64,000 nt of DNA. Source: Hyalangium minutum. GTDB lineage: Bacteria > Myxococcota > Myxococcia > Myxococcales > Myxococcaceae. Each line of letters starts with the position of its first letter. Positions within the stretch are counted from its first letter, which is position 1. The stretch is taken from contig NZ_JMCB01000007.1 of NCBI RefSeq assembly GCF_000737315.1, forward strand, positions 248,001 to 312,000. The letters run 5' to 3'. Of the stretch, positions 165-53,879 are shown piece by piece. The translations under genes and the position numbers were made by a program. The notes beneath the pieces are model-generated. The model was not told where the DNA came from. It searched no databases and saw nothing but the letters and a program-made list of their open reading frames with translations.

Positions 165-242
165 ATGAGGGGGGCGAGGCCCCCGTCTGAAGCGCTAGAA
201 GCCATCACGGGCCCATGGGGCCTGCTCGGAGATCGCACCGCC

Positions 243-1070: not shown

Positions 1071-1076
1071 CCCGAC

Positions 1077-10169: not shown

Positions 10170-10258
10170 GCGGAAGGCGGAGGACTCGAACCTCAGACCG
10201 GGAGCCGGTCCGCACCCGCTAGCAACGGGGCCTGGTGCCATCACCAGTTCACTCTTCC
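10170..10258 (-). tRNA. tRNA-Ser(GCT)
   Basis: Acceptor GGAAGAG, loop TT-GCT-AG, long variable arm, T loop GTTCGAGTC, G73. Confidence 0.85.
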
Positions 10259-10264
10259 AAAAAA

Positions 10265-10349
10265 GCGGAGCGAGGTGGAGTCGAACCACAGGCCCGTTGG
10301 ACCCTCCTGGGTTCCAGCCAGGTTGCCGGCCGCCCGGCAATCACGCTCC
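10265..10349 (-). tRNA. tRNA-Ser(GGA)
   Basis: CCTGG-CTGGAAC-CCAGG, long variable arm, GTTCGACTC. Confidence 0.85.
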
Positions 10350-10366
10350 AAAACGGCACTGCACAT

Positions 10367-10451
10367 GCGGAAGACAGGGGACTCGAACCCCAAGCGCCGA
10401 GCACTCGCACCGCTTTCGAAACGGGCCACCGGCCTCCGGTGTTGGTCTTCC
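10367..10451 (-). tRNA. tRNA-Ser(CGA)
   Basis: CCGT-TTCGAAA-GCGG, long variable arm, GTTCGAGTC. Confidence 0.85.
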
Positions 10452-10607
10452 AGAAAAGGTGCTGGCAGCTGCGGACCCGCCTGCCAGCGCGCGGGGAGGC
10501 TCTACAGGTGGGGGCCGCCTCTGGCGCACCCCCGCTCCACCTTGTGCTCCGTTCCGGGGCGGAGCGGTGGCGGGGACCACCTCTGGTGACCCCCCATTTC
10601 CCGGGCC

Positions 10608-11150
10608 TCACTCCTCCAGCTCCGTGTGCCAGTAGGCGACATCACGGAGGAACTTCCGCCACGAGACGGGCATGCCCTTCTCGTAGATGAAGGTGAACTG
10701 CAGCGACTCCGGCAGCCGCTTGGGCTTCACCGGCTGCGTGCGCAGCGCCATGCCAGCCTGCGCGGGCGTCCGGTTGCCCTTCTTCTGGTTGCAGGGCACG
10801 CACGCGATCACCACGTTCTCCCAGGTCGTCTTGCCACCCTGGGCGCGGGGAATCACATGGTCGTACGTCGCCTCCGGCCGCGACACCTTCTTATGGCAGT
10901 ATTGGCACTTGCACCCGTCGCGCAGGTACACGTTGTCGCGGCTGAACTTCACGCCGCGGTGCCGCCACCGGAAGAAGCTCACGAACCGAATGATGGACGG
11001 CATCTTCAGCTCGAGAGTGACTGAGCGGACGAAACGGTCCTCGTACTCCTCGACCACCTCGACCTTGCCCTGCCAGATCAACATCATCGCGCGTTGCCAC
11101 GGAACCCGTGCAACGGGCTCGTAGGCCTGGCTCAACACCAGCGTCTCCAT
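10608..11150 (-). CDS. HNH endonuclease (McrA-like) embedded in the tRNA array
   Basis: METLVLSQAY.P, FSRDNVYLRD..KCQYC, TYDHVIPRAQGG, WEN.V.AC..CN..KGN. Confidence 0.9.
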   Translation of the reverse strand: METLVLSQAYEPVARVPWQRAMMLIWQGKVEVVEEYEDRFVRSVTLELKMPSIIRFVSFFRWRHRGVKFSRDNVYLRDGCKCQYCHKKVSRPEATYDHVIPRAQGGKTTWENVVIACVPCNQKKGNRTPAQAGMALRTQPVKPKRLPESLQFTFIYEKGMPVSWRKFLRDVAYWHTELEE

Positions 11151-11171
11151 GACACGGGGCCTTTCGGGAAA

Positions 11172-11246
11172 TGTCCGCGGCGAGGTTCGAACTCGCACGT
11201 GAGCTGGGTTTGAGCCAGCCGCCTCTCCCATTTGGGCCACGCGGAC
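11172..11246 (-). tRNA. tRNA-Leu(CAA), short variable arm
   Basis: GCTGG-CTCAAAC-CCAGC; 5-nt variable region; A73. Confidence 0.8.
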
Positions 11247-11273
11247 GGTTGTTGGGAGCTTCTGAGAAGGAAG

Positions 11274-11349
11274 TACCGCGGGCGGGATTCGAACCCGCAA
11301 CCTCTGCATTCTGAGTGCAGCGCCTCTACCAAGGTTGGGCTACCGCGGC
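11274..11349 (-). tRNA. tRNA-Leu(CAG), short variable arm
   Basis: CTGCA-CTCAGAA-TGCAG; 5-nt variable region; GTTCGAATC. Confidence 0.85.
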
Positions 11350-11363
11350 ATGAAAGGGTGAAG

Positions 11364-11437
11364 TGCCGGAAGAGGGAGTCGAACCCTCACTCGCCAGACT
11401 CTCGAGCTGGTGCCTCTACCTATTGGGCTACTCCGGC
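11364..11437 (-). tRNA. tRNA-Leu(GAG), atypical loop
   Basis: CCAGC-TCGAGAG-TCTGG, C33, short variable region. Confidence 0.65.
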
Positions 11438-11444
11438 ATTTGAG

Positions 11445-11517
11445 TGCACGCCCTGGGGATCGAACCCAGCGAAATCGGTGTGTGGGACCGACGCCGTCTC
11501 CAGCTGGCTCGGCGTGC
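11445..11517 (-). tRNA. tRNA-Val(CAC), atypical loop
   Basis: TCGGT-CCCACAC-ACCGA, C33. Confidence 0.65.
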
Positions 11518-11526
11518 ATGAGAAGT

Positions 11527-11596
11527 TGCGGAGCAGGGAGTCGAACCCTGCAGCCCTGGCGTATGAGACCCGGTGGGGCGTCCGGCCCCTCTCCGC
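11527..11596 (-). tRNA. tRNA-Met(CAT), degenerate
   Basis: Loop CT-CAT-AC, imperfect anticodon stem and short D arm, T loop GTTCGACTC. Confidence 0.55.
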
Positions 11597-11619
11597 ATCA
11601 AAATCAACGTGCTGCTGAG

Positions 11620-11693
11620 TGCCCCTGGCAGGAATTGAACCTGCGGCCTCACGGTTCGGAGCCGTGCACTCTCATCCACTGAGCTACAGGGGC
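11620..11693 (-). tRNA. tRNA-Arg(CCG)
   Basis: CACGG-CTCCGAA-CCGTG; TAGCTCAGTGGATGAGAG D arm. Confidence 0.85.
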
Positions 11694-11703
11694 AAAACTG
11701 AAG

Positions 11704-11777
11704 CGGTCCCGGCAGGACTCGAACCTGCGACCCCACGGCTCGCAACCGTGTGCTCTCATCCACTGAGCTACGGAACC
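11704..11777 (-). tRNA. tRNA-Arg(GCG)
   Basis: CACGG-TTGCGAG-CCGTG; D arm same as neighbouring Arg(CCG). Confidence 0.8.
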
Positions 11778-11792
11778 AAAAAGACAAGGAAG

Positions 11793-11863
11793 TGGACCCG
11801 CCGGGATTCGAACCCGGGTCGCTCGGGTGCAAACCGAGCATTCTCCCGCTGAACTACGGGCCC
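11793..11863 (-). tRNA. tRNA-Ala(TGC)
   Basis: CTCGG-TTTGCAC-CCGAG; G3-U70 present (GGGCCCG/CGGGTCC). Confidence 0.85.
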
Positions 11864-11879
11864 AAAATTCACTGCTGAG

Positions 11880-11951
11880 TGGAGCCGCCGGGGATTGAAC
11901 CCGGGACCTCTCGGATGCGAACCGAGCGCTCTCCCGCTGAGCTACGACCCC
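11880..11951 (-). tRNA. tRNA-Ala(CGC)
   Basis: CTCGG-TTCGCAT-CCGAG; G3-U70 present. Confidence 0.85.
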
Positions 11952-11955
11952 ATGA

Positions 11956-12027
11956 AGCTGCTGGCGGGACTCGAACCCGCATTGTCCTGAGTGGCGCTCA
12001 GGTGCCTCACCTCTCGGCCACGGCAGC
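11956..12027 (-). tRNA. tRNA-Gly(GCC), atypical loop
   Basis: CCTGA-GCGCCAC-TCAGG, U73, G32/C33. Confidence 0.7.
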
Positions 12028-12050
12028 AAAACCTACGTCGGTACTTCGAG

Positions 12051-12123
12051 AGCCCTCGGCCGGAATCGAACCGGCGACACCCTGTTTACGAAACAGGTGC
12101 TCTGCCTACTGAGCTACAAGGGC
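12051..12123 (-). tRNA. tRNA-Thr(CGT)
   Basis: CCTGT-TTCGTAA-ACAGG. Confidence 0.85.
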
Positions 12124-12126
12124 AAA

Positions 12127-12196
12127 TGGCAGGCCGCCAAGGAGTTGAACCCTGCTGCTCGGATTTGGAGCCCAAGCTGCTCCCGGAGCGCGACCC
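12127..12196 (-). tRNA. tRNA-Trp(CCA), short D arm, encoded 3' CCA
   Basis: Loop CT-CCA-AA, G73 followed by CCA. Confidence 0.65.
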
Positions 12197-12216
12197 ATCA
12201 ACCAGTGAAGAAGAAG

Positions 12217-12289
12217 TGCCGTCTCCTGGAATTGAACCAGGTCCTCCTGCTTTTCAGACAGGCGCGCGAACCATCTACGCCAAGGCGGC
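12217..12289 (-). tRNA. tRNA-Phe(GAA)
   Basis: CCTGT-CTGAAAA-GCAGG. Confidence 0.8.
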
Positions 12290-12306
12290 AAAACATCGAC
12301 TGCGAG

Positions 12307-12377
12307 CGCTCCTGCAGGGAATCGAACCCTGTTCACGTGGTAGACGGCCACGCCGCGATCCAATCGCGTCCAAGAGC
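12307..12377 (-). tRNA. tRNA-Asp(GTC), atypical loop
   Basis: CGTGG-CCGTCTA-CCACG, G73, C33 and U37. Confidence 0.65.
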
Positions 12378-12400
12378 AAGGGAAGGGTGCTTCACTTCAG

Positions 12401-12472
12401 TCGGGGCACCTGGACTCGAACCAGGATTGCTCGCGTATCAGACGAGAGTCTTTGCCTTTGGACCATACCCCG
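12401..12472 (-). tRNA. tRNA-Ile(GAT)
   Basis: CTCGT-CTGATAC-GCGAG. Confidence 0.75.
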
Positions 12473-12493
12473 AAGTGCTACAAGTGTTACAAG

Positions 12494-12567
12494 TCTGGGT
12501 GGCAGGACTTGAACCTGCGACCTCACGGATCCGAACCGTGCGCTCTACCAAGCTGAGCCACACCCAG
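12494..12567 (-). tRNA. tRNA-Pro(CGG)
   Basis: C1-G72, CACGG-TTCGGAT-CCGTG. Confidence 0.85.
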
Positions 12568-12576
12568 ATAAACAAG

Positions 12577-12652
12577 TCGGGATGACTGGATTCGAACCAG
12601 CGGCCTCACGCACCCCAAGCGTGCGCTCTCATCCAAGCTGAGCTACATCCCG
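12577..12652 (-). tRNA. tRNA-Pro(GGG)
   Basis: C1-G72, CACGC-TTGGGGT-GCGTG. Confidence 0.85.
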
Positions 12653-12669
12653 ATGAAACATGCTGCGAG

Positions 12670-12742
12670 CGCCTCGTGCGGGAGTCGAACCCGCCTTTCC
12701 ACATTGAGAGTGTGGCGGCCTAAACCGATAGCCGAACGAGGC
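12670..12742 (-). tRNA. tRNA-Glu(CTC)
   Basis: CCACA-CTCTCAA-TGTGG, G73. Confidence 0.8.
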
Positions 12743-12755
12743 AAAAAGACTGGAG

Positions 12756-12826
12756 AGGCTTGTGCGGGAGTTGAACCCGCCACCAGACGGTTTTGCAGAC
12801 CGCCGCCGCCCCGGGCGGAACAAGCC
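12756..12826 (-). tRNA. tRNA-Cys(GCA)
   Basis: GCGGT-CTGCAAA-ACCGT, U73. Confidence 0.75.
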
Positions 12827-12832
12827 AAGATG

Positions 12833-12905
12833 CTCGGAGGGAGGGACTCGAACCCTCAACCCCGCGGTTAACAGCCGCGTGCTCTGCCAGTTGAGCTACC
12901 TCCGA
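12833..12905 (-). tRNA. tRNA-Asn(GTT)
   Basis: U1-A72, CGCGG-CTGTTAA-CCGCG, G73. Confidence 0.9.
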
Positions 12906-12917
12906 ATACTGCTTCAG

Positions 12918-12989
12918 CGCCGAGAGAAGGATTCGAACCTTCGTTTACGGGTTCAGAGCCCGCCGCCCTGCCAATTGGACCATCTCGGC
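12918..12989 (-). tRNA. tRNA-Gln(CTG)
   Basis: GCGGG-CTCTGAA-CCCGT, G73. Confidence 0.8.
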
Positions 12990-13004
12990 ATACCGACAAG
13001 GTGA

Positions 13005-13075
13005 AGCGGGTGACGGGACTCGAACCCGTGTCACTGGCTTGGGACGCCAGAGTCTTGCCACTAGACGACACCCGC
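13005..13075 (-). tRNA. tRNA-Gly(CCC)
   Basis: CTGGC-GTCCCAA-GCCAG, U73, GCGGGTG acceptor. Confidence 0.8.
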
Positions 13076-13087
13076 GTGTGCTGCGAG

Positions 13088-13158
13088 TACCCCCGGAGGG
13101 AATCGAACCCTCACCGTCCGCTTAAGAGGCGGATGCTCGACCAATGAGCTACGGAGGC
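13088..13158 (-). tRNA. tRNA-Lys(CTT)
   Basis: TCCGC-CTCTTAA-GCGGA. Confidence 0.85.
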
Positions 13159-13204
13159 GTTTGACCGCCCCCGTGCAAGCGGGCGGACGAACTTCACCAC
13201 TGCG

Positions 13205-13223
13205 ATTCAGTTGTCAGAGAACA
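13205..13223 (-). promoter_or_regulatory. rrn-type boxA antitermination-like element
   Basis: Minus strand TGTTCTCTGACAACTGAAT resembles rRNA-operon boxA context (GTTCTTTGAAAACTGAA), in the first array spacer. Confidence 0.5.
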
Positions 13224-13256
13224 AGGGACTGCCTTGGAACTGCTCACACTGCTGAG

Positions 13257-13342
13257 TGGGGATGCTGAGAGTTGAACTCAGTGGGCCGTCGAGCGGCTCC
13301 GGAGTTACAAGCCGGTGCGTCTCCGTAACGCGCTACATCCCC
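13257..13342 (-). tRNA. tRNA-Tyr(GTA), first gene of the array
   Basis: GGGGATG/CATCCCC acceptor, loop TT-GTA-AC with a mismatch closing the stem, long variable arm, A73. Confidence 0.7.
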
Positions 13343-13353
13343 AGGAAGTGATG

Positions 13354-13425
13354 CGAGGTGATGCTTTGAAAACAGCGAGGCCGGGTTCCCCTTCGGGAGC
13401 CCGGCCTCTGTGCGACGTCACCTCG
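13354..13425 (-). other. Nested stem-loop immediately 5' of the first tRNA (terminator/attenuator or processing hairpin)
   Basis: Inner hairpin 13377-13408 GAGGCCGGGCTCCC-GAAG-GGGAACCCGGCCTC followed by GCTGTTTT; outer pair CGAGGTGA/TCACCTCG. Confidence 0.55.
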
Positions 13426-13447: not shown

Positions 13448-13600
13448 TCAGAAGCCGGGTAGTCTGTTCCAGTACCACTGGGATTCGACCGAGAAAACCG
13501 GAGCGGTGACCAGACTGGGACGCGGGAGCGAATCGATGCAACCGGCAAAGTTGTCAGTGTGCTTGGGGTTCATCGCGCTCTGCAGCGTCACCGTTGTCAT
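13448..13600 (-). CDS. Putative 50-aa leader peptide of the tRNA operon
   Basis: SD GAAAGGAG 8 nt before ATG; MTTVTLQSAMNPKHTDNFAGCIDSLPRPSLVTAPVFSVESQWYWNRLPGF*. Confidence 0.5.
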   Translation of the reverse strand: MTTVTLQSAMNPKHTDNFAGCIDSLPRPSLVTAPVFSVESQWYWNRLPGF

Positions 13601-13626: not shown

Positions 13627-13651
13627 GACGCGGCAATAAATGCTTCCTGAC
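13627..13651 (-). promoter_or_regulatory. Candidate ECF-sigma promoter 1 (tRNA operon)
   Basis: GTCAGGAA-N13-CGTC. Confidence 0.7.
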
Positions 13652-13787
13652 GCGCACGTGGATTTTCCACGCGCCCATCAGGCTCGAGTTCTTTTGCTGG
13701 CTTCTTTAAAGCGCTCAGCCAGCTTTATTAAGGAAGGGAATCTGTCTTCCTTTCGATGCCGAGCTGCGTGCCGAGGCCCAGGGCGGG

Positions 13788-13829
13788 AAAAAGAAAAAGG
13801 CCCCGGAGCACGAAGCTCCGAGGCCTTTT
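13788..13829 (-). terminator. Intrinsic terminator after the small Ubl-like gene
   Basis: AAAAGGCCTCGGAGC-TTCG-TGCTCCGGGGCC followed by TTTTTCTTTTT. Confidence 0.85.
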
Positions 13830-14149
13830 CATGTACCGATACTGGGCGCCGCCGACTCCAGATTCTCCGCCGTACCGCACCAGCTTCCCTGCTTCGCTGG
13901 GGCGCCGAACGGGACCTTCGGCCGCAGGTAGATGCGATCCTCGCCGCGTGCCCCACGGAAGCGGTCCACGACGTAGTTCTGGAAGGCATCGTCGCGAAGG
14001 TGGACCAGGTGCATGCCCGGCACGCCGCCGGAGCGCACGACTTCCACCGCGATGCGCCGCACGTCTGCGTCCGACACGTGCCCGTCCAACTCCACCGGCA
14101 CGTCGGCGGACATCCCGTCATAGGTGATGTTGAGCGTCGTCATCGCCAT
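13829..14149 (-). CDS. Small conserved-looking hypothetical protein, possibly ThiS/MoaD/ubiquitin-like
   Basis: SD AAAGGA; TLNITYDGMSADVPV...NYVVDRF...RIYLRPKVPFG pattern of alternating beta-strands and one helix; fold is a guess. Confidence 0.6.
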   Translation of the reverse strand: MAMTTLNITYDGMSADVPVELDGHVSDADVRRIAVEVVRSGGVPGMHLVHLRDDAFQNYVVDRFRGARGEDRIYLRPKVPFGAPAKQGSWCGTAENLESAAPSIGT

Positions 14150-14203
14150 CACATCCTTTCACTTGGAGCGGACCGCGAGTCGCGGCCGGTCCAGGTGGCC
14201 TGG

Positions 14204-14229
14204 GACGCGTACCTTGTCGCGTTCCTGAC
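14204..14229 (-). promoter_or_regulatory. Candidate ECF-sigma promoter 2 (Ubl-like gene)
   Basis: GTCAGGAA-N14-CGTC. Confidence 0.7.
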
Positions 14230-14279
14230 AGCCCCGACCAGTCGAAAGAGGGACAGACAGGCGGGTATGCTCCGCGCCC

Positions 14280-15824
14280 ATGAAAAGAACCCTTCCTGGT
14301 GTCAGAGTCGCTCTCACCCTCATGGCCCTCCTGGGGGTTTCCCTGGTGGGCTGTAGCAGCGAGGACGTCGCCCCGACTCCCGCAGGCGGGAGTGTCGATG
14401 TTCAGTTCGACGTGGCCGTGCCCGCCAGCACCCCCTGTAGCGCCACAGTGGAGGTGGTCGGCAATGATCCGGCGCTTGGGGGTGGAAAGTCTCCGGGTCT
14501 GGCGCTCAAGCGTGACGTGGACGGCCACTTCCGGGGCTCGGGTACATTCACGGTGGGGAAGGTACTCACCTACAACTTCGTGCTGACCCATCCCTCCGCG
14601 CAGGAGCCCATCGCTTTCCACAGCTACATGGTGGAGAACCGCCGGAACATCCAGCGCCAATGGACCGTCAGCAAGTGGTCCGTGGCCCCGGACCCGGAGC
14701 ACTTGCCTACCCTCTTCGTGGTCGATGTGCCCGCAAGCACGCCCGCGAATTCGGAGATCTGGCTGTCCGGCAACCAGGAGTCGTTGGGCAACTGGAATGG
14801 CGCGGGTGTGCAGCTGGCTCAGAGCTACTCGAGCGAGCGCAGTTATGTCACCTGCCTGGAGTTCTCGCCGGGCACCAACCTGGAGTTCAAGGCGACCCGC
14901 GGTTCGTGGGACTCGGTGGAGAAGGATGCCCAGGGTGGGGAGATCAACAACCGCTTCCACCGCGTGGACGCTCCGTCCACCGTGGCGGCCCAGGTGGGCT
15001 CGTGGCGTGACCTGGTTCCCGAGGAGCCGCGTCCGGACACGCTCACCGGCAACATCAAGTACCACGAGGTGGACGGGTCTGCTTATGGCCTGAAGAATCG
15101 CCAGCTCATTGTCTGGCTGCCTTCCAACTACGACACCGACACGAACGCCCACTACCCGGTGCTTTACATGCATGACGGCCAGAACCTGATGAATGTGAAG
15201 ACGTCTGCCTTTGGTGTTGAGTGGGGCGTGGACGAGACGGCGCAGCAGCTCGTCGAGGCCGGGCAGATCGAGCCCATCATCATCGTGGGCATCTACAACA
15301 CCGTGGACCGTGTCCTCGAGTACACGCAGATGCCCAGCCCGCCGCGCGACGGTGGCAAGGCGGATGACTACGGTCGCCTGCTGGTGGAGACCATCAAGCC
15401 GCTCATCGACTCGACATATCGGACGAAGCCGGAGCCGGAGTACACCGGTCTGGCGGGCTCGTCGCTGGGGGGGCTCGTGTCCATGTACTTGGGCCTCACG
15501 CACGGCGACACCTTCACGCGGCTCGGCGTTATCTCTCCCTCCGTTTGGTGGGCCAGTCGAGACATTGTCTCGCGCGTCAACGCGCTCTCCGACAAGAAGC
15601 CGCTGCGCATCTGGTTGGACATCGGGACCGAGGAGCTTGGGAGCGACGCGGATAACCAGGAGACCGTGGACGACACTCGGTTGCTGAGGGATGCGCTCAT
15701 CGCCAAGGGCTGGGTGCTGGATGGCGACCTCAAGTATCTCGAGGCAGAGGGCGGCCGGCACAACGAGGCTTCCTGGCGGGCCCGCATGGACCAGATCCTC
15801 AAGTACCTCTACCCGGCGCACTGA
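14280..15824 (+). CDS. Lipoprotein: CBM20-like domains plus alpha/beta-hydrolase (putative esterase)
   Basis: Lipobox LVGC; SGNQESLGNW, LEFKATRGSW (CBM20-like); YPVLYMHDGQN, GSSLGG, HNE..W. Confidence 0.85.
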   Translation: MKRTLPGVRVALTLMALLGVSLVGCSSEDVAPTPAGGSVDVQFDVAVPASTPCSATVEVVGNDPALGGGKSPGLALKRDVDGHFRGSGTFTVGKVLTYNFVLTHPSAQEPIAFHSYMVENRRNIQRQWTVSKWSVAPDPEHLPTLFVVDVPASTPANSEIWLSGNQESLGNWNGAGVQLAQSYSSERSYVTCLEFSPGTNLEFKATRGSWDSVEKDAQGGEINNRFHRVDAPSTVAAQVGSWRDLVPEEPRPDTLTGNIKYHEVDGSAYGLKNRQLIVWLPSNYDTDTNAHYPVLYMHDGQNLMNVKTSAFGVEWGVDETAQQLVEAGQIEPIIIVGIYNTVDRVLEYTQMPSPPRDGGKADDYGRLLVETIKPLIDSTYRTKPEPEYTGLAGSSLGGLVSMYLGLTHGDTFTRLGVISPSVWWASRDIVSRVNALSDKKPLRIWLDIGTEELGSDADNQETVDDTRLLRDALIAKGWVLDGDLKYLEAEGGRHNEASWRARMDQILKYLYPAH

Positions 15825-15926
15825 GAGGCCGCACGCCCGGTCCGCAAGGAGCCGGGCGGCAACCTACGTAGGAAGTAGGGTTCATTCCTCCTGACCTGGT
15901 GGGTACACTGGGTCAGGAGGTGGTAC

Positions 15927-16658
15927 ATGGACCTGAAGCTTCTGCATGACTGGAACGTCACGCCCCAAGAGGCTGTGGCGCTCCAGAACTCCCTGCGTGA
16001 GCGGCTCGTGCTTCGAGCTCCCTCGGGGTTGAGAGTGTCCCGAGTCGCCGGTGCGGATATCTCCACCGAGCGTGGCAATGACACCGGGTACGGGGCCTTT
16101 GTGGTCCTCGACGCGGAGTCACTGGCCCCTGTCTCTCAGCAGGGTGCTGAGGCCCCGCTTGGCTTTCCCTACGTGCCAGGTCTGTTGTCGTTCCGGGAGC
16201 TACCCGTGCTCGCGGCCGCTTGGATGCGCTTGGAGTCCGCGCCCGATTTGCTCGTCTTCGATGGGCAAGGCACAGCTCACCCTCGCCGCATGGGAATTGC
16301 CTGCCATGGCGGTCTGCTCTTTGGCGTGCCGTCCATTGGGTGTGCCAAGTCGCTGCTGGTGGGCTCGCACGGTCCCCTAGGTGAAGAACGCGGCGCAACG
16401 GCGGAGATCCGGCACCGAGGTGAGGTGATCGGCATGGCGGTGCGGACGCGCCGGGGCGTCAGTCCCGTCTATGTCTCTCCTGGCCACTTGATGGACCTGC
16501 CCACCGCCGTGGAGTGGGTCCTTCGCTTGAGCCCTCGCTACCGCGAGCCGGAGACGACACGGCACGCGCATCGGCTCGTCAATGTGCTGCGCCGCCAGGC
16601 CCATGGAGGTTTGCAGGGTGACGTGTGTGGCCAGTGGGGAAGGGCATGGTCACCTTGA
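15927..16658 (+). CDS. nfi: Endonuclease V (deoxyinosine 3' endonuclease)
   Basis: VAGADIS, FPYVPGLLSFRE, DGQGTAHPRRMGIA.H.G, IGCAKS.L.G, V.VSPGH, YREPETTRHAH. Confidence 0.95.
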   Translation: MDLKLLHDWNVTPQEAVALQNSLRERLVLRAPSGLRVSRVAGADISTERGNDTGYGAFVVLDAESLAPVSQQGAEAPLGFPYVPGLLSFRELPVLAAAWMRLESAPDLLVFDGQGTAHPRRMGIACHGGLLFGVPSIGCAKSLLVGSHGPLGEERGATAEIRHRGEVIGMAVRTRRGVSPVYVSPGHLMDLPTAVEWVLRLSPRYREPETTRHAHRLVNVLRRQAHGGLQGDVCGQWGRAWSP

Positions 16659-16767
16659 AGCCGCGACGGAGGTTGTCCATGGCTGAGAATCGTGAACCCA
16701 CCCAGGCCCCCGAGGTGAATGCACGGCAGGGGACCACTCAGAGAGACGTACCCCTAGCCCGCAAATG

Positions 16768-16811
16768 AGAGGCGCCACCTCCCCGGAGTGCTCCGGAGAG
16801 GTGGCGCCTCT
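16768..16811. terminator. Strong hairpin between convergent nfi and vWA genes
   Basis: AGAGGCGCCACCTC...GAGGTGGCGCCTCT with inner CCGGAG-TG-CTCCGG. Confidence 0.7.
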
Positions 16812-16817
16812 ATTGGC

Positions 16818-18581
16818 TCAGGCCGCCTTCAGCAGCGGCGTGCGCATCACGCGCTCCACCCAGCCAGACTGGCTCACGCCAGCCGCCTTCGGCGCGTCCA
16901 GCAGCGCCTTCAGCACCCGCGGCACCTGGTAGGGGTCCGCGAACTGGTCCACCGACACCTCGCTGAACGGCACCTGCAGCTGGCCCGCGCACGTCCGCAC
17001 GGTGTTACCCCGTGCGCTCGCCACGCTCACCATCAGCGCCAGCGCCGCCACCGTGTAGCCGCACTCGCGGAAGGCCCGCGCGAACTGGTCGCCGGCCTCG
17101 CCCGCCTCGTCGCCCACCACGATGACCACGAGCTTCGCCTCCGCCGGCACCTTCACGCCGTCCCGGTGCAGAGCGTGCACCGCGGCCGCGTGCGTCGTAC
17201 CGCCAGACGCCTTGATGCCCTGCAGCATGTGCTGCACTGCCATGCGGCTGGACACCTTCGGCTTGAGCACCGTGCCCACCGTGTCGAACGACGCGATGTG
17301 CAGCTTCTCCAGCGGGAAGCCCGCGAGGATGCGCGTGAGCGCCTCCTTGGACTGCTCGATGGCCCCCTCCATGGAGCCGGACTTGTCGATGAGGAACATC
17401 ACCCGCACGTCCGTCTCCGCCGTCGCCTCCGCCACTGCCTGCCGGGCTGCGTTGTCGCTCGCCTCCTCCAGCTTCTCTCGCAGCTCCTTGCTCCGGACGT
17501 TCTTCGCGATGTGGAGCGCCCGCTGGTCCGTTGCCGTCTGCACGGCCTTCTCCCAGCGCGCCCGGATGGTGGGCTCCGACAGCAAGCCCAGCTCCTCCAG
17601 CGTTGGCGTCATCATCCGCATGTCCCGGTCCGACAGCGACGGCAGCAGCGCCACCATGATGGCCGGCGTGAGCCCCACGTCCTTCGGCAGGCGGCCCACC
17701 ACCTCCTTGAAGGAGAGCTTCTGCGACTCGATGGTCTCGCAGATCTCCGCCTCGGAGAGCCCGTCGAAGCGCTCGCGCTTGACCAGCCGCAGGCCCTCGA
17801 GGCCCACCGCCCGGTGGCCCCCGCTGGACTGCTTCTGCTTCCAGCCGAGCACCTCGAAGAACGCCTGCGTCTCCGGCTTGTAGCCGGCCTTGCGGGCGAG
17901 CTTCTTCAGCGTCTCCTTGAAGCCGGCCTTCACCAGACCCTCGAGCATCGGCAGGTTCTTCTCCCGCGCCTGGAGCCACTTCTGCGCCACGCGCTTCCAG
18001 CGGCCCAGCGGCGGCCGCTTGGAGCCGGGGTCACCGAACCCCGCCTCGCGGTTGAGCCGCGCGATCTCCGGCGTCTCGAGCAGCTCGGCCACTCGCAGCA
18101 CCGCCTTGGGCGTGAGCATGCGCGTGGACTTGCGCTCGTAGTGCAGGATCATCGCCTCGCCGATGGCCCGGTGGTCGTCGTCGAAGAAGGCGACCGTGCC
18201 GTCGTCCTCACGAACCGGCTGACCCGCGTGGCCCTGCACCAGCATCAGCGCGCAGGTCGCCACCTTCAGGTCACGCCAGTCCGTCTGCGTCAGCGCGTAG
18301 GACGCGAAGTGCGCCATCAGGTCCGTGTTGAGCTTGTAGATGTCCAGGATCTGCCGGTACAGCTTCACCGCCGCCGGCACGAAGAGGCCCGGGCTCACCC
18401 GCGTCGCCTTGGCCGGGATCGCCGCGTTGCCGCGGGGCGCCGGCTGCCAGACGCCGTTGAGGTCGAGGCCCGGCCGGTTGTGCCACAGGTGGGCGGAGCC
18501 GTTGAGCACGAGCTCGAGCAGCCGCTCGGCGGGCCCGCGCTGTGCCTCCGGAATCATCGGGGTGTTCTGCTTCGTCGTCAT
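16818..18581 (-). CDS. Divergent Ro60/TROVE-like protein with C-terminal vWA domain
   Basis: vWA MIDAS MFLIDKSGSM, GGT, VVGDE; helical N-terminus with GRWKRVAQKWL and LKKLARKAGYKP resembling TROVE motifs; flanked by Y-RNA-like genes; SD GGAGGG. Confidence 0.65.
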   Translation of the reverse strand: MTTKQNTPMIPEAQRGPAERLLELVLNGSAHLWHNRPGLDLNGVWQPAPRGNAAIPAKATRVSPGLFVPAAVKLYRQILDIYKLNTDLMAHFASYALTQTDWRDLKVATCALMLVQGHAGQPVREDDGTVAFFDDDHRAIGEAMILHYERKSTRMLTPKAVLRVAELLETPEIARLNREAGFGDPGSKRPPLGRWKRVAQKWLQAREKNLPMLEGLVKAGFKETLKKLARKAGYKPETQAFFEVLGWKQKQSSGGHRAVGLEGLRLVKRERFDGLSEAEICETIESQKLSFKEVVGRLPKDVGLTPAIMVALLPSLSDRDMRMMTPTLEELGLLSEPTIRARWEKAVQTATDQRALHIAKNVRSKELREKLEEASDNAARQAVAEATAETDVRVMFLIDKSGSMEGAIEQSKEALTRILAGFPLEKLHIASFDTVGTVLKPKVSSRMAVQHMLQGIKASGGTTHAAAVHALHRDGVKVPAEAKLVVIVVGDEAGEAGDQFARAFRECGYTVAALALMVSVASARGNTVRTCAGQLQVPFSEVSVDQFADPYQVPRVLKALLDAPKAAGVSQSGWVERVMRTPLLKAA

Positions 18582-18678
18582 GGTCCCCTCCGGGAACGTG
18601 TTGCGGGTGAGTCGGAACGAAGCGGGCACCGGAACCAGCCGGTACCCGCCTCGGGTGGAAGTAGGTGAAAGGGAAAAG

Positions 18679-18821
18679 GTGCGCCCGAGTGGCGAAGCCA
18701 CGACGACCCTGTGGAAGGGCAGTGCTCTACCAGGCTGAGCTACGGGGCCATGGAGCGGCCCCGGCGGGAGTTGAACCCGCGACCCCTGCAGTGCTTGTAG
18801 GGCCTCACCGGCCGGGCGCTC
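18679..18821 (-). ncRNA. YrlA-like Y RNA (circularly permuted tRNA mimic)
   Basis: Order T arm (GCGGG-TTCAACT-CCCGC), acceptor hairpin (CGGGGCC-GCTCCAT-GGCCCCG), D arm (TAGCTCAGCCTGGTAGAGC); closed by GCAG/CTGC and terminal GCGCCCG/CGGGCGC stem. Confidence 0.8.
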
Positions 18822-18840
18822 AATCAGATGAGATGCAGGC

Positions 18841-19548
18841 TCACGAGAAGACGTTCACGTCTCCGTGCACCGGGAACAGCGCGACGTCTTTGCCGCCCCG
18901 GTAGGACTGCCTCGCGGGTACCGAGACGAGCTCCCACGAGGGGAGAACCACCGCGGTGAGCGAGCGTCCGTAGACACAGCCCGTGTCGATGCCGACCGCG
19001 TGCTCTGTCACCAGCGGCTTGTCGAACACCGTGTGCCCGAAGATGACGCGCTCGGGGCCCTTCCAGTGGTGCGTCCAGAATCGATGCGTCGCTGGCGCCT
19101 TCGAGGGCCAGTAGCTCTTCTTCTCTGGAGGCTGGATGCACTGGGCGTGGAGCAGGTGGTACGGATCCTGCGACTCGATGGGCTTGTGGGGCATCACTCC
19201 CGCGTGCACCACGACGGCGTTGTACTCAGGCAGCCGGATGTAGAGCGGGAGCTTGGCGAAGTAGTCCAGGTGCTCGGGTTCGAGCGCCCGCCGCGTCTCC
19301 AGGTGGTCCGGCGAGAGCCGGTCGTCCGAGCGGCGGCGCTGTTGAAGGTGCGACTCCTCGTGGTTGCCCTGGATGGCCTCGTACTTCATGGCCAGCTCCA
19401 CGCACTCGCGGCGCTTGGGGCCTCGGTCCACGAGGTCTCCCGCGAAGATGATGCGGTCGCTGGAAGTCGCGCCCACCTTGGCGAGCAGCTCGAGGGCCTC
19501 GTCGTAACAGCCGTGCAGGTCGCCGATGACGATGGTTCGGGGAGACAT
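18841..19548 (-). CDS. Calcineurin-like metallophosphoesterase (ApaH/PP1/Pnkp-phosphatase-like)
   Basis: IGDLHG, GDLVDRG, GNHE, VHAG, FGHT, IDTGCVYG. Confidence 0.9.
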   Translation of the reverse strand: MSPRTIVIGDLHGCYDEALELLAKVGATSSDRIIFAGDLVDRGPKRRECVELAMKYEAIQGNHEESHLQQRRRSDDRLSPDHLETRRALEPEHLDYFAKLPLYIRLPEYNAVVVHAGVMPHKPIESQDPYHLLHAQCIQPPEKKSYWPSKAPATHRFWTHHWKGPERVIFGHTVFDKPLVTEHAVGIDTGCVYGRSLTAVVLPSWELVSVPARQSYRGGKDVALFPVHGDVNVFS

Positions 19549-19568
19549 GGGACAACACCTCAAGAATG

Positions 19569-19704
19569 GAGCGCCCGAGTGAGGAAGCCGTAAGTTGCGC
19601 TGAATTCACGGTTCAGTGTCGGGACCCCCCGACGGCATCGCCCTGATGGGAGAAGGGTGGAGTCGAACCACCGGAGCTTGTAAGGCCTCTTCGGCCAGGC
19701 ACTC
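19569..19704 (-). ncRNA. Second Y-RNA-like gene
   Basis: Terminal stem GAGTGCCTG/CGGGCGCTC, GCCGAAG motif, T arm GGTGG-TTCGACT-CCACC; 5' and 3' ends paralogous to 18679-18821. Confidence 0.7.
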
Positions 19705-19723
19705 TAAAAGAGTTGCCGCCAAG

Positions 19724-19748
19724 GACGCCGCCTCCCCTGGTTCCTGAC
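19724..19748 (-). promoter_or_regulatory. Candidate ECF-sigma promoter 3 (Y RNA / Ro operon)
   Basis: GTCAGGAA-N13-CGTC about 20 nt upstream of the Y-RNA stem. Confidence 0.7.
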
Positions 19749-19784
19749 GGCGGATTTTCCGGCTCCAGCCTTCCCCGGCCTTCT

Positions 19785-19810
19785 GTCAGGAACCTGGAAA
19801 AGCCCCCGTC
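19785..19810 (+). promoter_or_regulatory. Candidate ECF-sigma promoter 4 (autoregulatory, sigma gene)
   Basis: GTCAGGAA-N14-CGTC on the + strand, divergent from promoter 3. Confidence 0.7.
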
Positions 19811-19974
19811 TTGCTCTGCGACGCCCCCCTACCTGTCCGTTCACCGGCGGTGGGGGTCCCCGTCATCGGAGGATGCCTGCGGATGCCATCGTGGTACCTT
19901 GCCGAGCCGTGGATGCCCCGCCCACCCGCCAGGTGGGGAGGCACTGAACTCCTCGGCGCTACCAGGTTCCTTCG

Positions 19975-20640
19975 GTGTACGACCAGCTCTCGGATGACGA
20001 ATTGTTCGCGGAAGTCTCCCGACGCCGCGCGGCCGGCGAGTCCTTCAATGGACCGCTCGGCGCGCTTGTCGAGCGGTGGGGCCGTCCCGCCCGTTATGTC
20101 ATCGGCAAGATCCAGGCCAGCTATGGCCGGGGCTCTCCCGCGGATGGGGATGAGCTCTTCCAGGATGCCGTGGGGAAGTTCATCTCCCGCGGCCTCGACC
20201 AGTTTCGCGGCATCTCCGAGCACATGCCCGGCAAGGCCGCTTCCCCCAAGACGTTCTTCCTGCGAATCGTCAAGCACGTCGCCATCGACTTCTACCGGCG
20301 GCAGCGCGAGGAACTGGCCCCAGCGCCCAGCGACCCGGACGACACCATGGAGGAGTCTCCTTCCGAGATGGCGCAGGCCGTGGAGAAGGCCAAGCGCACC
20401 GAGGAGCGCTCGGACGCTCAAGAGCTCTACTGGGCAGCGTTTGCCCGCCTCCAACAAGAGCACCCCAAGGAGGCTGGCGCGTGGGAGCTGTACCACCACC
20501 AAGATGTGGAGGACCACGAAGAATGCGCCCGTCTGCTGAACATCACCGTGGTCAACTCCTACAAGCGCGTCAGCCGCGCGCAGGCCTACCTCAAGCTGTA
20601 TCTGCTCGAGTTGAAGCAGACAGCCGAGGGAGGGGACTGA
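19975..20640 (+). CDS. ECF-type RNA polymerase sigma factor
   Basis: DGDELFQDA.. / FFLRIVKHVAIDFYRR (region 2), EECARLLNITVVNSYKRVSRA (region 4 HTH). Confidence 0.85.
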   Translation: MYDQLSDDELFAEVSRRRAAGESFNGPLGALVERWGRPARYVIGKIQASYGRGSPADGDELFQDAVGKFISRGLDQFRGISEHMPGKAASPKTFFLRIVKHVAIDFYRRQREELAPAPSDPDDTMEESPSEMAQAVEKAKRTEERSDAQELYWAAFARLQQEHPKEAGAWELYHHQDVEDHEECARLLNITVVNSYKRVSRAQAYLKLYLLELKQTAEGGD

Positions 20641-20680: not shown

Positions 20681-21865
20681 ATGAGTGACGCTCTCTCCCG
20701 TTATCAGGCCCGGCATCAGCAGCTCTCCAGTGGTTCCTCCTCCGTGGGAGGTACCCTCGAAGCCGCAGGAGATCTGCTTCGTCGTAGCTCTCGCGTCGGA
20801 GTGCAAGCCGTGGAGCCAGCGCTGCGCGCGGTGACTCGACCTCAGATCGAGACATGGCTGCAGAGTCAGAAGCCCGCCGAGCTTCGGACCCAGTTGCTCA
20901 AAGCCGCCGAGGAAGCTGTCGAGGTCGCGCTGGGAGAAGGTGGCGACGAGGCGGAGATGTGGCGAACTTCGGCGATGGATGGGTTGTCCGCGCGAGATCG
21001 CGCCGCCTCCGCCGCCCGCGCACTGGGGCAGTGGGAGGCCCTCCACGGAGCCCTGACGGGGCCCGCAGCGCAACGGCGGGACGATTTTCTCCAGGCCCTC
21101 GGGAATCTCGATAACGCGCTCCGCCCGAGGGCCCGCTGGTTCATCCCCCTGAACCCGCAACGCAGACAAGAGCGCGACCTGCTCGACTCTTCCGAGCAAG
21201 CGCAGGCCTGGTGGTTCTCTGCCCGGGCCGACTGTGATGACTTGGTGGCTACCTGGACGCAGCAGCCCCAGTCCCTCTCTCCTCACCTTCAGAGCTGTGC
21301 CGACTGCCGCGACGATCTCGCGGACACCGCCATCGTTGATCAGCCTCCTGCCCGTCACGTGAGCGCCGATGAGCTGTGGCGCCTCGACGTGGGACTGCTG
21401 TCCACCGACGAGCGCGCTCGCATCGAGTCGCATACCGCTCAGTGCTCCGACTGTGCCCAGGCTGTGCTGGCCCTCGAGGAGGGTGACGCCGCCATTGATG
21501 AGGCTCTGGAGATGGAGGCAGAGGGCTCCACGGGGCCGGGTCTTGCCGCGCGCACCTCGCGGGAGGCTGTTCCTCGCCGCCCCGGTGCCCGTCTCCCCGA
21601 GCAGCGCGAGGTGCTGGAGGAGCGCCGCGATTTTCGCGTGCTCCTCGTGCGTGAGCGCCAGCGCGTGAGGCTCCTGGTGCAGCCGCTCTCTGGCCGCACC
21701 GTCACTGCCGCCGTGTTCACTGCTCCCGGCAAGCCCTCGATCAAGCCGACTCAGGGGCCCGAGGGGATTTCCTTCGAGCTCGGCGCCGACGGTGGTGGCA
21801 CGCGCTCCGCTCACCTCACCGTGATGGCCGGCGGAGAGACCCTGGAGCGCGACTTCTCCTACTGA
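20681..21865 (+). CDS. Soluble anti-sigma-like protein with two HxxxCxxC zinc motifs
   Basis: HLQSCADC and HTAQCSDC (second in zf-HC2 context LSTDERARIESH..QC..C); no obvious TM helix; directly after sigma. Confidence 0.65.
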   Translation: MSDALSRYQARHQQLSSGSSSVGGTLEAAGDLLRRSSRVGVQAVEPALRAVTRPQIETWLQSQKPAELRTQLLKAAEEAVEVALGEGGDEAEMWRTSAMDGLSARDRAASAARALGQWEALHGALTGPAAQRRDDFLQALGNLDNALRPRARWFIPLNPQRRQERDLLDSSEQAQAWWFSARADCDDLVATWTQQPQSLSPHLQSCADCRDDLADTAIVDQPPARHVSADELWRLDVGLLSTDERARIESHTAQCSDCAQAVLALEEGDAAIDEALEMEAEGSTGPGLAARTSREAVPRRPGARLPEQREVLEERRDFRVLLVRERQRVRLLVQPLSGRTVTAAVFTAPGKPSIKPTQGPEGISFELGADGGGTRSAHLTVMAGGETLERDFSY

Positions 21866-23081: not shown

Positions 23082-23618
23082 TCACAGGGACGCGGGACGC
23101 GATGAGAGCGCCCCCGCCGGAATCCCCGTGCTCCCCTCGTAGCGGGGCACCTCGCCCATGCCGAGCGGGTACTGCACCAGCAGCCCTCGCGCCGCAGCCT
23201 CCGACGCGCAGGACTCTTGCGTGGTGAGATCCGGGCACGCCACCACCGTGCTCGGCAGATCCATCGGCAGCTCCAGCGTCAGCACCGCCGGAGAGGGCTG
23301 CTCCACCGGCTGCGACACCGCCGCGCCAGGGTGATGCACCATCAGCGCCAGCGCCGCCGCCGCCGCCATTGCCGGGCCTACGACGACCGCCGCTACTCGC
23401 GCCACGCGCCAGCGGGCCGGGCGTACGACGTTGTCCTCTCGCGGCGCCGCGCTGGCTACTTCGCGCAGCTGCTCCTCCAGCATCGCCTCCTGCTGCAGCA
23501 ACCGGGCGCACGCCTCGCAGACCAGCGTGTGCGCCTCGAGCTTGCGCTCGCGCTCGGGATCCAGCGCACCCAGGATGTACTGCTCCGCGTCAGACGGAGT
23601 CAGGTGCGGTTCAGTCAT
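23082..23618 (-). CDS. zf-HC2 membrane anti-sigma factor
   Basis: YILGAL..ERERKLEAHTLVCEAC, followed by a TM helix. Confidence 0.85.
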   Translation of the reverse strand: MTEPHLTPSDAEQYILGALDPERERKLEAHTLVCEACARLLQQEAMLEEQLREVASAAPREDNVVRPARWRVARVAAVVVGPAMAAAAALALMVHHPGAAVSQPVEQPSPAVLTLELPMDLPSTVVACPDLTTQESCASEAAARGLLVQYPLGMGEVPRYEGSTGIPAGALSSRPASL

Positions 23619-24252
23619 GGCTCTCCTCCTCGAGCGCGGTTCGCAGCTTCTTGCGCACCTCGCACAGGATCTGTCGCACGCGCTGCACGGACAGGCCGAC
23701 ACGCGCCGCGACTTCGGCATGGGGTAGCTCCTGCCCATCGCAGGCCAGGAGGAACACGTTACGGGCGCTCGGCGAGCACCCCGCGAGGGCCTCGTGGGCC
23801 CGGGCCAGCTGCTCCTCGGACAACAGGCGCCGCTCGGCCGACACAGTCGGATCCACCGGGTGCTGCCGCTCGGGCAGCTCCTCCACGTTGCCCGTGATCG
23901 CCTCGCGCCGGGCACGGCGGGCATCGTCCGCGGCCAGGAAGGCCGCCTGGGTGATCGCGAGGTTGGGCAGGCGCAGCTCCGTCAGCAGCCCGCGCTGCTG
24001 TTGTTGGATGAGCCGCGTCCAGGCCTCCTGGGCCAGCTCATGGGCCCGGTCCACCCGGATCCCCTTGGCCAGCAGCGATACCACGACGCGCCGGTGGTGG
24101 CGCGCGATGAGCGCGTCCCAGGCCCGCCGGTCGCCTGCCAGCGCCCGCTGGGAGACATCCTCGTCCCCCTTTTGGGTGCGCTCCACGGCGTCTCCGGCGT
24201 CCTCTTGCTGTCGGCCCATTATCGGCAAGCCCTGCACAGCCGCTCCCACCAT
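23611..24252 (-). CDS. ECF sigma factor
   Basis: AWDALIARH, AHELAQEAW, LPHAEVAARVGLS..RVRQIL; overlaps anti-sigma start. Confidence 0.85.
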   Translation of the reverse strand: MVGAAVQGLPIMGRQQEDAGDAVERTQKGDEDVSQRALAGDRRAWDALIARHHRRVVVSLLAKGIRVDRAHELAQEAWTRLIQQQQRGLLTELRLPNLAITQAAFLAADDARRARREAITGNVEELPERQHPVDPTVSAERRLLSEEQLARAHEALAGCSPSARNVFLLACDGQELPHAEVAARVGLSVQRVRQILCEVRKKLRTALEEESHD

Positions 24253-53772: not shown

Positions 53773-53879
53773 TCAGAGCCCCAGCGAGTTGGCGCCGTGC
53801 GTCATTTGAAACCGCTTCTGATTAGGTCGGATATTCTGGCAAAACCGGAAAATCCAAGCAGGCCTAAGAGAGGCACGCC

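Follow-up and report, generated by a model that had tools for sequence, protein, structure and literature searches.

A stretch of 64,000 nucleotides from the myxobacterium Hyalangium minutum (contig NZ_JMCB01000007.1, positions 248,001 to 312,000 of the forward strand; hereafter the window) carries repeated copies of a two-part motif, GTCAGGAA-N13/14-CGTC, that points to a dedicated regulon for RNA repair and tRNA supply. We read this motif, with a probability of roughly 0.78, as the -35 and -10 elements of a promoter used by a Myxococcota sigma factor of the extracytoplasmic function (ECF) type, the candidate being a protein of 221 amino acids (aa) encoded behind one of the copies. GTCAGG and CGTC make up its conserved core, and an A-tract is frequently present 8-10 nt further upstream.

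Ro60/Y RNA particles and long arrays of tRNA genes are widely distributed among bacteria, and little is understood of what they do; to our knowledge, only two regulators of such modules have been described, RtcR in enterobacteria and TrcR in cyanobacteria. If our reading is correct, one sigma/anti-sigma switch would govern Ro60 and its Y RNAs, the RNA ligase RtcB and a phosphoesterase resembling ApaH and Pnkp, together with a tRNA array in some lineages. This would constitute a third, unrelated mode of regulating these modules and would argue that they form one damage response. The genetically tractable Myxococcus xanthus carries an orthologue of the sigma factor (ABF87418.1), making function and inducing signal directly testable.

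The motif in the window and at orthologous loci

Within the window (66.9% G+C; genes chosen by codon-position G+C and named with Pfam and NCBIfam), a pattern scan returned exactly the four exact copies that an initial annotation of this DNA had reported, and none appeared in 100 dinucleotide-preserving shuffles. Copy 1 (13627-13651(-), spacer N13) lies ahead of the leader of a tRNA array, copy 2 (14204-14229(-), N14) ahead of a small protein gene, p107, and copy 3 (19724-19748(-), N13) ahead of a non-coding RNA, Y1, and divergent from copy 4 (19785-19810(+), N14), which precedes the sigma gene and is presumably autoregulatory. The GTCAGGAA octamer occurs at these four places and nowhere else in the 64 kb, and relaxing the spacer to N12-16 yielded no further GTCAGGAA/CGTC match. 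The initial annotation had also described the copies as intergenic, correctly oriented and just upstream of a unit, which holds for all four, with two corrections to the units: copy 1 is followed not by a protein gene but by a short leader open reading frame (ORF) and then an array of 26 tRNA genes, and the phosphoesterase gene behind copy 3 is preceded by the non-coding Y-RNA-like RNA. Further, its four-copy regulon stands in the number of exact copies but overlooked a fifth, degenerate site at 58807-58832(+), which emerges when the core alone is searched (GTCAGG-N15/16-CGTC; five matches in the window versus 0.85 expected). Copies 1 and 3 do share an upstream GGAAAATCC, as had been noted (13660-13668(-) and 19752-19760(-)); it occurs three times in the window versus 0.16 expected, at offsets from the -35 element that differ between the two copies (8 nt and 3 nt, respectively). 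The third GGAAAATCC, at 53847-53855(+), lies 25 nt ahead of a gene for a GH43 glycosidase (53880-55952) without an adjoining GTCAGG...CGTC and is probably there by chance.

Conservation was assessed in a sample of 80 genome loci encoding an orthologue of the sigma factor, with 10 kb on each side (1.35 Mb; L-numbers below denote these loci), drawn from Hyalangium, Myxococcus, Corallococcus, Pyxidicoccus, Archangium, Cystobacter, Vitiosangium and metagenome-assembled genomes (MAGs) down to 60% sigma identity. The 1.35 Mb contain 109 exact motifs, 106 of them directly 5' of, and co-oriented with, the sigma gene, the phosphoesterase gene, rsr, p107, the tRNA leader or a Y RNA; the three exceptions lie near a locus end (L013, L035) or beside an unidentified gene (L080). 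Allowing one mismatch at most, the motif precedes the sigma gene in 66 of 79 loci (exactly in 50), even in MAGs whose sigma factor is 60-67% identical, the phosphoesterase gene in 40 of 53, p107 in 12 of 16 (11 exact) and the rsr-like gene in 16 of 44, where an rsr gene without its own site usually sits behind the phosphoesterase gene. Ahead of the tRNA leader, it is exact in all six related loci, 26 nt before the leader ORF. At seven neighbouring control genes, a second ECF sigma gene included, the best matches never had fewer than two mismatches.

The motif also travels with the genes that it precedes. Specifically, in Archangium the phosphoesterase gene has been relocated 2-6 kb from the sigma gene and has carried both motif and Y1 along, in Corallococcus, which is without the phosphoesterase gene, motif and Y1 stand ahead of rsr, and relocated rsr-like and p107 genes are likewise accompanied by the motif. 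At L074, where the sigma factor is 64% identical, the same four-promoter layout recurs (tRNA array, p107, rsr and sigma gene) with the -35 variants GTCAGGAC, GTCAGGTC and GTCAGGCT, of which GTCAGGAC is the one before its tRNA array.

In every case the motif runs in the direction of the downstream unit, and its spacer varies freely in sequence at a fixed length (13 nt in 70 sites and 14 nt in 104). Sites for this footprint were selected with GTCAGG and CGTC fixed by the search; the two bases after GTCAGG are A in 78% and 72% of sites, and 36% of sites have an AAAA tract in the 20 nt upstream, versus a background of 0.4%. Co-orientation, the free spacer sequence of fixed length and the genes that follow are together the signature of a two-part, autoregulated ECF-type promoter and not of a symmetric operator. 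The proposal made in the initial annotation, that the motif is the autoregulated promoter of the adjacent sigma factor, is supported by the 66 sigma loci, by the relocations and by the control genes, and we make the strong inference from these sequences that the 221-aa sigma factor recognizes it.

The fifth copy (GTCAGGCG-N14-CGTC) stands 123 nt 5' of a gene for the RNA ligase RtcB (58956-60380(+); full Pfam RtcB domain, E=2e-90). A corresponding site is found 113-129 nt before the rtcB start codon in seven further myxobacterial genomes (Stigmatella, M. fulvus, Archangium, Corallococcus, Pyxidicoccus, Citreicoccus and H. versicolor; 7.4 kb each), with an exact GTCAGGAA in three, an intact GTCAGG core in three more and one core mismatch in Citreicoccus. 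The six genomes with an intact core hold no second core match in the 7.4 kb, and the gene neighbours of rtcB differ from genome to genome. Three close metagenomic orthologues add one exact site, one -35 variant and one core mismatch, so that the ten myxobacterial loci pooled have an offset of about 111-139 nt, an exact core in eight and the full GTCAGGAA in four; no comparable site was seen at 33 rtcB loci of other organisms and phyla. Because a matching site recurs at a conserved offset before rtcB while its neighbours vary, rtcB very probably belongs to the regulon, 39 kb from the other units.

Sigma factor, putative partner and candidate dependent units

The sigma factor (19975-20640(+)) is divergent and ECF-like, with a Pfam Sigma70_r2 match of 27.8 bits (cut-off 24) and a helix-turn-helix-like C-terminus whose putative region 4.2 helix, NSYKRVSRAQA, is invariant among orthologues. 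These orthologues extend across Myxococcaceae, Archangiaceae and Myxococcota MAGs, the nearest among named genomes being in Hyalangium (84-90% identity). The protein ends right after region 4, and neither Pfam nor NCBIfam detected an additional domain. Group 4 ECF sigma factors consist of the sigma-2 and sigma-4 domains only, in about 200 aa, with a co-transcribed cognate anti-sigma factor and a two-part autoregulated promoter. The gene starting 40 nt 3' of the sigma gene (20681-21865(+)) encodes an anti-sigma-like protein of 394 aa with two HxxxCxxC motifs, a Pfam zf-HC2 match at residues 238-259 (28.3 bits; cut-off 22.2), weak NCBIfam anti-sigma matches and, judged by eye, no obvious membrane segment. 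A zf-HC2 gene directly follows the sigma gene in 79 of the 80 loci, and the remaining locus stops within the sigma gene.

The distance from CGTC to the sigma start codon (19811-19974(+) in the window) is 161-173 nt in most Hyalangium, Myxococcus and Archangium loci; Corallococcus loci have 122 or 167 nt, and among the MAG loci that are most distant many have about 20-35 nt. The long leader may carry another regulatory element.

The unit behind copy 3 begins with Y1 (19569-19704(-)), a Y RNA-like non-coding RNA of 136 nt composed of a bulged closing stem, a T-arm with GGUUCGACUCC and two further hairpins. It begins about 20 nt after the CGTC of copy 3 and is kept directly after the promoter in about 45 loci. 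Its structure is backed by covariation: across 26 aligned sequences, pairing holds in 96.9% of cells, and compensatory changes occur at 12 of the 32 pairs, a level reached in 0 of 500 shuffles, with 3-6 in slid controls. The sole Rfam match of Y1 is a weak one to tRNA-Sec (19648-19736), which we rejected as a tRNA gene, as it is the T-arm region of Y1. Y2 (18681-18821(-)) is likewise Y RNA-like and non-coding, a tRNA mimic of the YrlA type with a D-arm and a T-arm, conserved in related loci; its match to Rfam YrlA, a family of tRNA-like Y RNAs from bacteria (47.9 bits, E=1.3e-8), lies below the gathering score of 69 and appears with an E-value threshold, Rfam at gathering thresholds returning tRNAs only. 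Both RNAs share the ends that form the closing stem, 5' GAGYGCCYGGCCG..GAGGCC and 3' GGCUUC..CACUCGGGCGC, and a search with this pattern found 72 Y-like RNAs in 53 related loci. In several Myxococcus genomes (L010:17386-17547(-), and around 17.4 kb in L011, L012, L015, L018 and L023), a third class of Y-RNA-like element shares these closing-stem sequences; it is found past uvrD, about 7 kb downstream of the sigma gene, and has no counterpart in the window.

Two protein genes complete this unit. The first (18841-19549(-)) encodes a calcineurin-like metallophosphoesterase (Pfam Metallophos, E=2.9e-15) that resembles ApaH, PrpE and the phosphatase module of Pnkp, with all NCBIfam matches below their equivalog cut-offs. 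The second (16818-18581(-)) encodes a 587-aa protein, helical in its N-terminal region and with a VWA domain at the C-terminus. Ro60/Rsr particles combine a protein that has a TROVE ring and a VWA domain with a neighbouring Y RNA, whose 5' and 3' ends pair in a bulged closing stem and which includes a tRNA-like module. Bacterial Y RNAs adjoin rsr and mimic tRNA (PMC4201824). The AlphaFold2 model of the 587-aa protein (predicted local distance difference test, pLDDT, 77.7) had full-length Ro60/TROVE structures as all ten of its best Foldseek matches in the PDB (E 1e-8 to 3e-6, with 1yvp at 1.3e-8, over about 560 aligned columns), among them Xenopus Ro with RNA, Deinococcus Rsr (2nvo) and a phage Ro60; the remaining listed matches align over far fewer columns, as would be expected if only the VWA domain were matched. 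Given these model matches and the two flanking Y RNAs, we read the protein as a divergent Ro60/Rsr, predicted to bind Y1 and Y2 and to form a particle with them.

Behind copy 1, a leader ORF of 50 codons (13448-13600(-); Shine-Dalgarno AAAGGAG) precedes a terminator-like hairpin with a U-rich tail (13368-13408(-)), located between the ORF and the first tRNA gene. Six relatives keep the start, length and ...PGF end of the ORF, and its substitutions by codon position are equivocal, showing no clear third-position bias. The predicted product of 50 aa uses every one of the 20 amino acids, and so do six of the seven versions; this property, noticed post hoc, is rare (0.25% of 50-aa stretches of window proteins; 0 of 41 random ATG ORFs of similar length). 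The hairpin folds with z=-3.6 and is conserved in L001, L003, L004 and L007; a simple terminator scan made no call at its position. An ORF with all 20 amino acids followed by a conserved hairpin suggests an attenuator of the tRNA array that would sense translation in general, a suggestion that we regard as tentative and more doubtful than not.

The array itself (10170-13342(-); ARAGORN, Rfam) comprises 26 tRNA genes, possibly 27, on one strand in 3.2 kb, 24 of them in 2.2 kb, with gaps of 3-26 nt except behind tRNA-Tyr, where the gap is 97 nt. A gene for an HNH endonuclease (10608-11150(-); Pfam) interrupts the array. By number, density and strand it is of the L-array kind (20 tRNA genes or more, on a single strand, with a density of no less than two per kb; PMC4758250, PMC8421152), a kind that is also supernumerary to a housekeeping tRNA set and silent until induced, as may hold here. 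Nineteen amino acids are covered; tRNA-His is the one missing here, L001 and L007 have it between Ile and Asp, and gene order is conserved in L001, L003, L004 and L007. Most anticodons pair with codons ending in G or C, in keeping with the host G+C at third codon positions (GC3, 0.8-0.95), and CCA is not encoded. A phage or island origin was set aside as the main explanation of the array, given its anticodons and the ordinary chromosomal genes carried by the window, LolA, MiaB, RNase J and UvrD among them.

Several observations on individual tRNAs may be added. Between the HNH gene and tRNA-Ser there is one more tRNA-like element, whose variable arm is long (10369-10451(-); Rfam tRNA-Sec, 35 bits, E=2e-4); ARAGORN did not call it, and it is the possible 27th gene. 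Immediately 3' of several tRNAs (Tyr, Lys, Glu, Asp, Ala-cgc and Arg-ccg; 11600-13260(-)) stands TCAGCAG or TCGCAGC, which may be a common processing signal or the trace of duplication. At L074, an array of at least nine tRNA genes starting Tyr-Lys...Gln-Asn lies behind the variant promoter (71-1157(-)), and in L068, like L074 a distant MAG, a single tRNA-Tyr sits inside a unit of two Y RNAs and the phosphoesterase gene (8144-8227(-)). As tRNA-Tyr is also first in the L074 array and in that of the window, it is possibly the oldest tRNA member.

On the same strand, 73 nt 3' of the array, a gene (7283-10096(-)) encodes a 937-aa fusion of a ClpB/ClpA-like double AAA+ ATPase (D1 and D2 modules) with an RF2-like PCRF domain at residues ~620-802 that has no GGQ motif. 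It follows the array in the window and in L001; in L061 and L080, both of them distant loci, it adjoins the sigma gene. The terminator scan gave no call between array and gene. Co-transcription is possible, and the protein may act on stalled or damaged ribosomes. For want of a motif of its own, we dropped it as a direct regulon member and keep it as a possible read-through or syntenic partner.

The unit behind copy 2 consists of p107 (13829-14149(-)), a small conserved protein of 106-107 aa here and about 83 aa in relatives. All relatives end in ...PKVPFGA (81-83 aa); in the window this stop codon is missing and the frame extends 24 more codons, into the region of a strong intrinsic terminator that closes the unit (13794-13830(-); 16-pair stem, then a T run). 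The protein had no match in Pfam, NCBIfam or PADLOC, and its single-sequence AlphaFold2 model (pLDDT 52; beta-beta-alpha-beta-beta order) was too poor for a structure search.

Taken as one system, these parts suggest the following scheme. The zf-HC2 partner, co-transcribed with the sigma gene, would keep the sigma factor inactive in the cytoplasm until an intracellular signal arrives; the released factor would then transcribe its own operon, amplifying itself, and would direct transcription, from start sites predicted downstream of each CGTC, of Y1, the metallophosphoesterase, Y2 and the Ro60-like Rsr, of the conserved ~83-aa protein, of the leader ORF, hairpin, 26-tRNA array and HNH gene, with possible read-through into the ClpB-RF2-like fusion, and of the distant rtcB. 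Jointly, the units could degrade or repair damaged structured RNA and replenish tRNA from a spare set, if Ro60 and the Y RNAs serve quality control, the phosphoesterase end healing or decapping, and RtcB ligation, as we assume. More speculatively, the whole might be a dedicated myxobacterial translation-damage response, in which a cytoplasmic anti-sigma factor senses RNA or translation damage, Ro60-Y RNA, the end-healing phosphoesterase, RtcB and near-complete spare tRNAs respond, and the attenuator acts as a second gate opened by any charged-tRNA shortage; in this full form, we consider the idea conceivable and rather doubtful.

Alternative readings and relation to known systems

Several findings weigh against the regulon as we propose it. 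The sigma factor is atypical: TIGR02937 (sigma70-ECF) aligns over residues 31-209 with a score of 37.4, under its cut-off of 42.9, region 4 has no Pfam match at E<=0.01, a profile search against the PDB found no relative, and, with GGAA taken as the counterpart of the usual ECF GGAAC, the spacing between -35 and -10 comes out short. An anti-sigma role for the 394-aa partner is inferred from its position and a 22-residue zf-HC2 match; its HxxxCxxC motifs make a thiol or oxidative trigger plausible, and the loss of the cysteines in L057, L063 and L075, the three most distant aligned sequences, counts against both. For the Ro60-like protein, Pfam finds VWA only and does not detect TROVE, phmmer and a 12-sequence profile against the PDB return VWA domains and no Ro60, the predicted TM-score of the model is low (pTM 0.45), and the ten Foldseek matches on which the Ro60 assignment rests have template modelling (TM) scores of 0.38-0.52. 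Finally, the ClpB-PCRF gene has no promoter motif upstream in the window, L001, L061 or L080, and tRNA arrays occur in the sample in Hyalangium-like loci and L074 only, which makes the tRNA arm specific to some lineages.

One alternative is that another sigma factor reads the motif and that the site before the 221-aa sigma gene reflects a cascade instead of autoregulation. The window offers candidates, namely the second ECF gene (23611-24252(-)), about 3 kb from the 221-aa sigma gene and syntenic in 35 loci, and a third at 38801-39370, but in none of these 35 loci does the region upstream of the second gene match with fewer than 2.5 mismatches, the motif persists ahead of the 221-aa sigma gene in L054-L080, where the second ECF gene is not nearby, and the invariance of the putative region 4.2 helix parallels that of GTCAGG. 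We therefore hold a cascade to be improbable. That the motif is instead the operator of a DNA-binding repressor or activator, with transcription from other promoters, appears highly improbable to us: the site is asymmetric and two-part, of constant direction and with an unconstrained spacer of fixed length, most single sites lack an inverted partner, Y1 starts some 20 nt past CGTC, and the intergenic regions concerned gave no call for a promoter of the sigma-70 type. What speaks for an operator is that copies 3 and 4, separated by 36 bp, are inverted relative to each other, that the conserved A-tract GGAAAATCC lies near many sites and that the Anabaena analogue uses a repressor, TrcR (PMC10272220).

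A different objection accepts the promoter and regulon and holds that the tRNA array and its HNH gene are a selfish, horizontally acquired L-array that captured, or landed behind, one of the promoters, with no benefit in a damage response. L-arrays do spread horizontally, often with homing HNH endonucleases (PMC8421152), and the restricted distribution of the array in our sample and the loss of tRNA-His from some copies would fit such a history. Yet the anticodons fit the GC3 of the host, loci with sigma factors 84-90% identical have kept the promoter, the leader ORF, the hairpin and the order of the genes, a distant lineage has an array beginning Tyr-Lys...Gln-Asn behind a variant of the same promoter, and the L068 tRNA-Tyr lies within a Y RNA-phosphoesterase unit. 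The analogous Anabaena array is, moreover, induced by translation stress and linked to survival under such stress (PMC8421152). On balance we judge a selfish array unlikely, and favour its membership in the sigma-dependent regulon.

Among known systems, the closest match for the Ro/Y RNA/RtcB part is the rsr-yrlBA-rtcBA operon of Salmonella and E. coli, activated by RtcR, a sigma-54 enhancer-binding protein. Both combine an orthologue of Ro60 (here a probable one) with two neighbouring tRNA-like Y RNAs and with RtcB, and in both a single dedicated stress regulator (here a proposed one) is in control. However, the regulator here would be an ECF-type sigma factor with an anti-sigma-like partner in place of RtcR with sigma-54 (there is no RtcR near rtcB in the window, where RtcR matches are limited to weak AAA+ ones of the ClpB-like protein), the genes are spread over at least five promoters with rtcB 39 kb off and no rtcA seen, the putative Rsr is too divergent for Pfam TROVE, and the ApaH/Pnkp-like phosphoesterase, p107 and the tRNA array are added. 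PrfH-RtcB2, a ribosome rescue and repair pair, likewise links a release-factor homologue genetically to an RtcB-type repair system; the PCRF domain here differs in having no GGQ, in its fusion to a ClpB/ClpA-like ATPase and in its place after the tRNA array and not beside rtcB, and its membership in the regulon is possible.

The sigma factor and its promoter have partial likenesses of their own. ECF41 sigma factors use the promoter consensus TGTCACA-N16-CGTC, lack an anti-sigma factor and carry a SnoaL-like extension of about 100 aa at the C-terminus. The initial annotation had drawn this comparison, which stands for the layout alone: both promoters are two-part, with GTCA in the -35 and CGTC at the -10 element and a similar distance between them (21-22 nt here), whereas the -35 element here is GTCAGGAA and the sigma factor is not an ECF41 member, because it has no C-terminal extension and is paired with a zf-HC2 partner. 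SigR-RsrA and other pairs with a zinc-binding anti-sigma (ZAS) factor resemble our pair in that the partner has no membrane segment obvious by eye and carries HxxxCxxC in its zf-HC2/anti-sigma-domain match, and in the autoregulation of the sigma factor, here predicted from the motif. They differ in that our partner is 394 aa long, with a 220-aa N-terminal region, two HxxxCxxC motifs and cysteines that distant sequences have lost, and in that the regulon here would concern RNA metabolism and not thiol homeostasis.

For the tRNA part, the closest match is Anabaena sp. PCC 7120, whose 26-gene trn L-array is silent until translation stress and is co-regulated with the adjacent HNH gene all8564 and rtcB by the repressor TrcR (PMC8421152, PMC10272220), a ribbon-helix-helix protein that binds at the -10 region (PMC10272220). 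Here too, a long same-strand tRNA array, an HNH gene and rtcB come together. In contrast, the array in the window is chromosomal, has anticodons suited to a high-GC host and lies behind a putative dedicated sigma promoter, a leader ORF and a hairpin instead of under a repressor, and the Anabaena regulon as listed is without Ro60 or Y RNA. The nearest relatives of the window's RtcB outside the myxobacteria are cyanobacterial (Nostoc and Coleofasciculus, 64-68% identity); together with the co-regulation of rtcB and an L-array in cyanobacteria, this kinship hints at horizontal module transfer.

The proposed regulon, which is akin to ECF regulons, Rtc repair modules and inducible L-arrays, differs from the enterobacterial and Anabaena systems in its class of regulator, in bringing both modules under one switch and in adding the phosphoesterase, p107 and possibly the ClpB-RF2-like fusion. 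In a literature search that lay outside most subscription journals and hence does not prove the link between ECF factors and RNA repair to be unpublished, we found no paper tying an ECF sigma factor to Rsr, Y RNA, RtcB or tRNA arrays, none on tRNA arrays in Myxococcota and nothing relevant for ABF87418.1.

Other features of the window

PADLOC, run on ten regulon or neighbouring proteins, gave generic AAA+ and HNH matches only. A tRNA-Met called by ARAGORN at 26701-26782(+) is most likely a false positive, lying inside the uvrD frame (24971-27295) and without Rfam support. Two further features have no link to the regulon: a 502-aa protein (51691-53199(+)) with a C-terminal AHH nuclease toxin domain, and a 2044-aa reading frame (40144-46278(-)), opposite which runs a series of 83-aa ORFs with a period of about 270 nt, a periodicity that suggests internal repeats.

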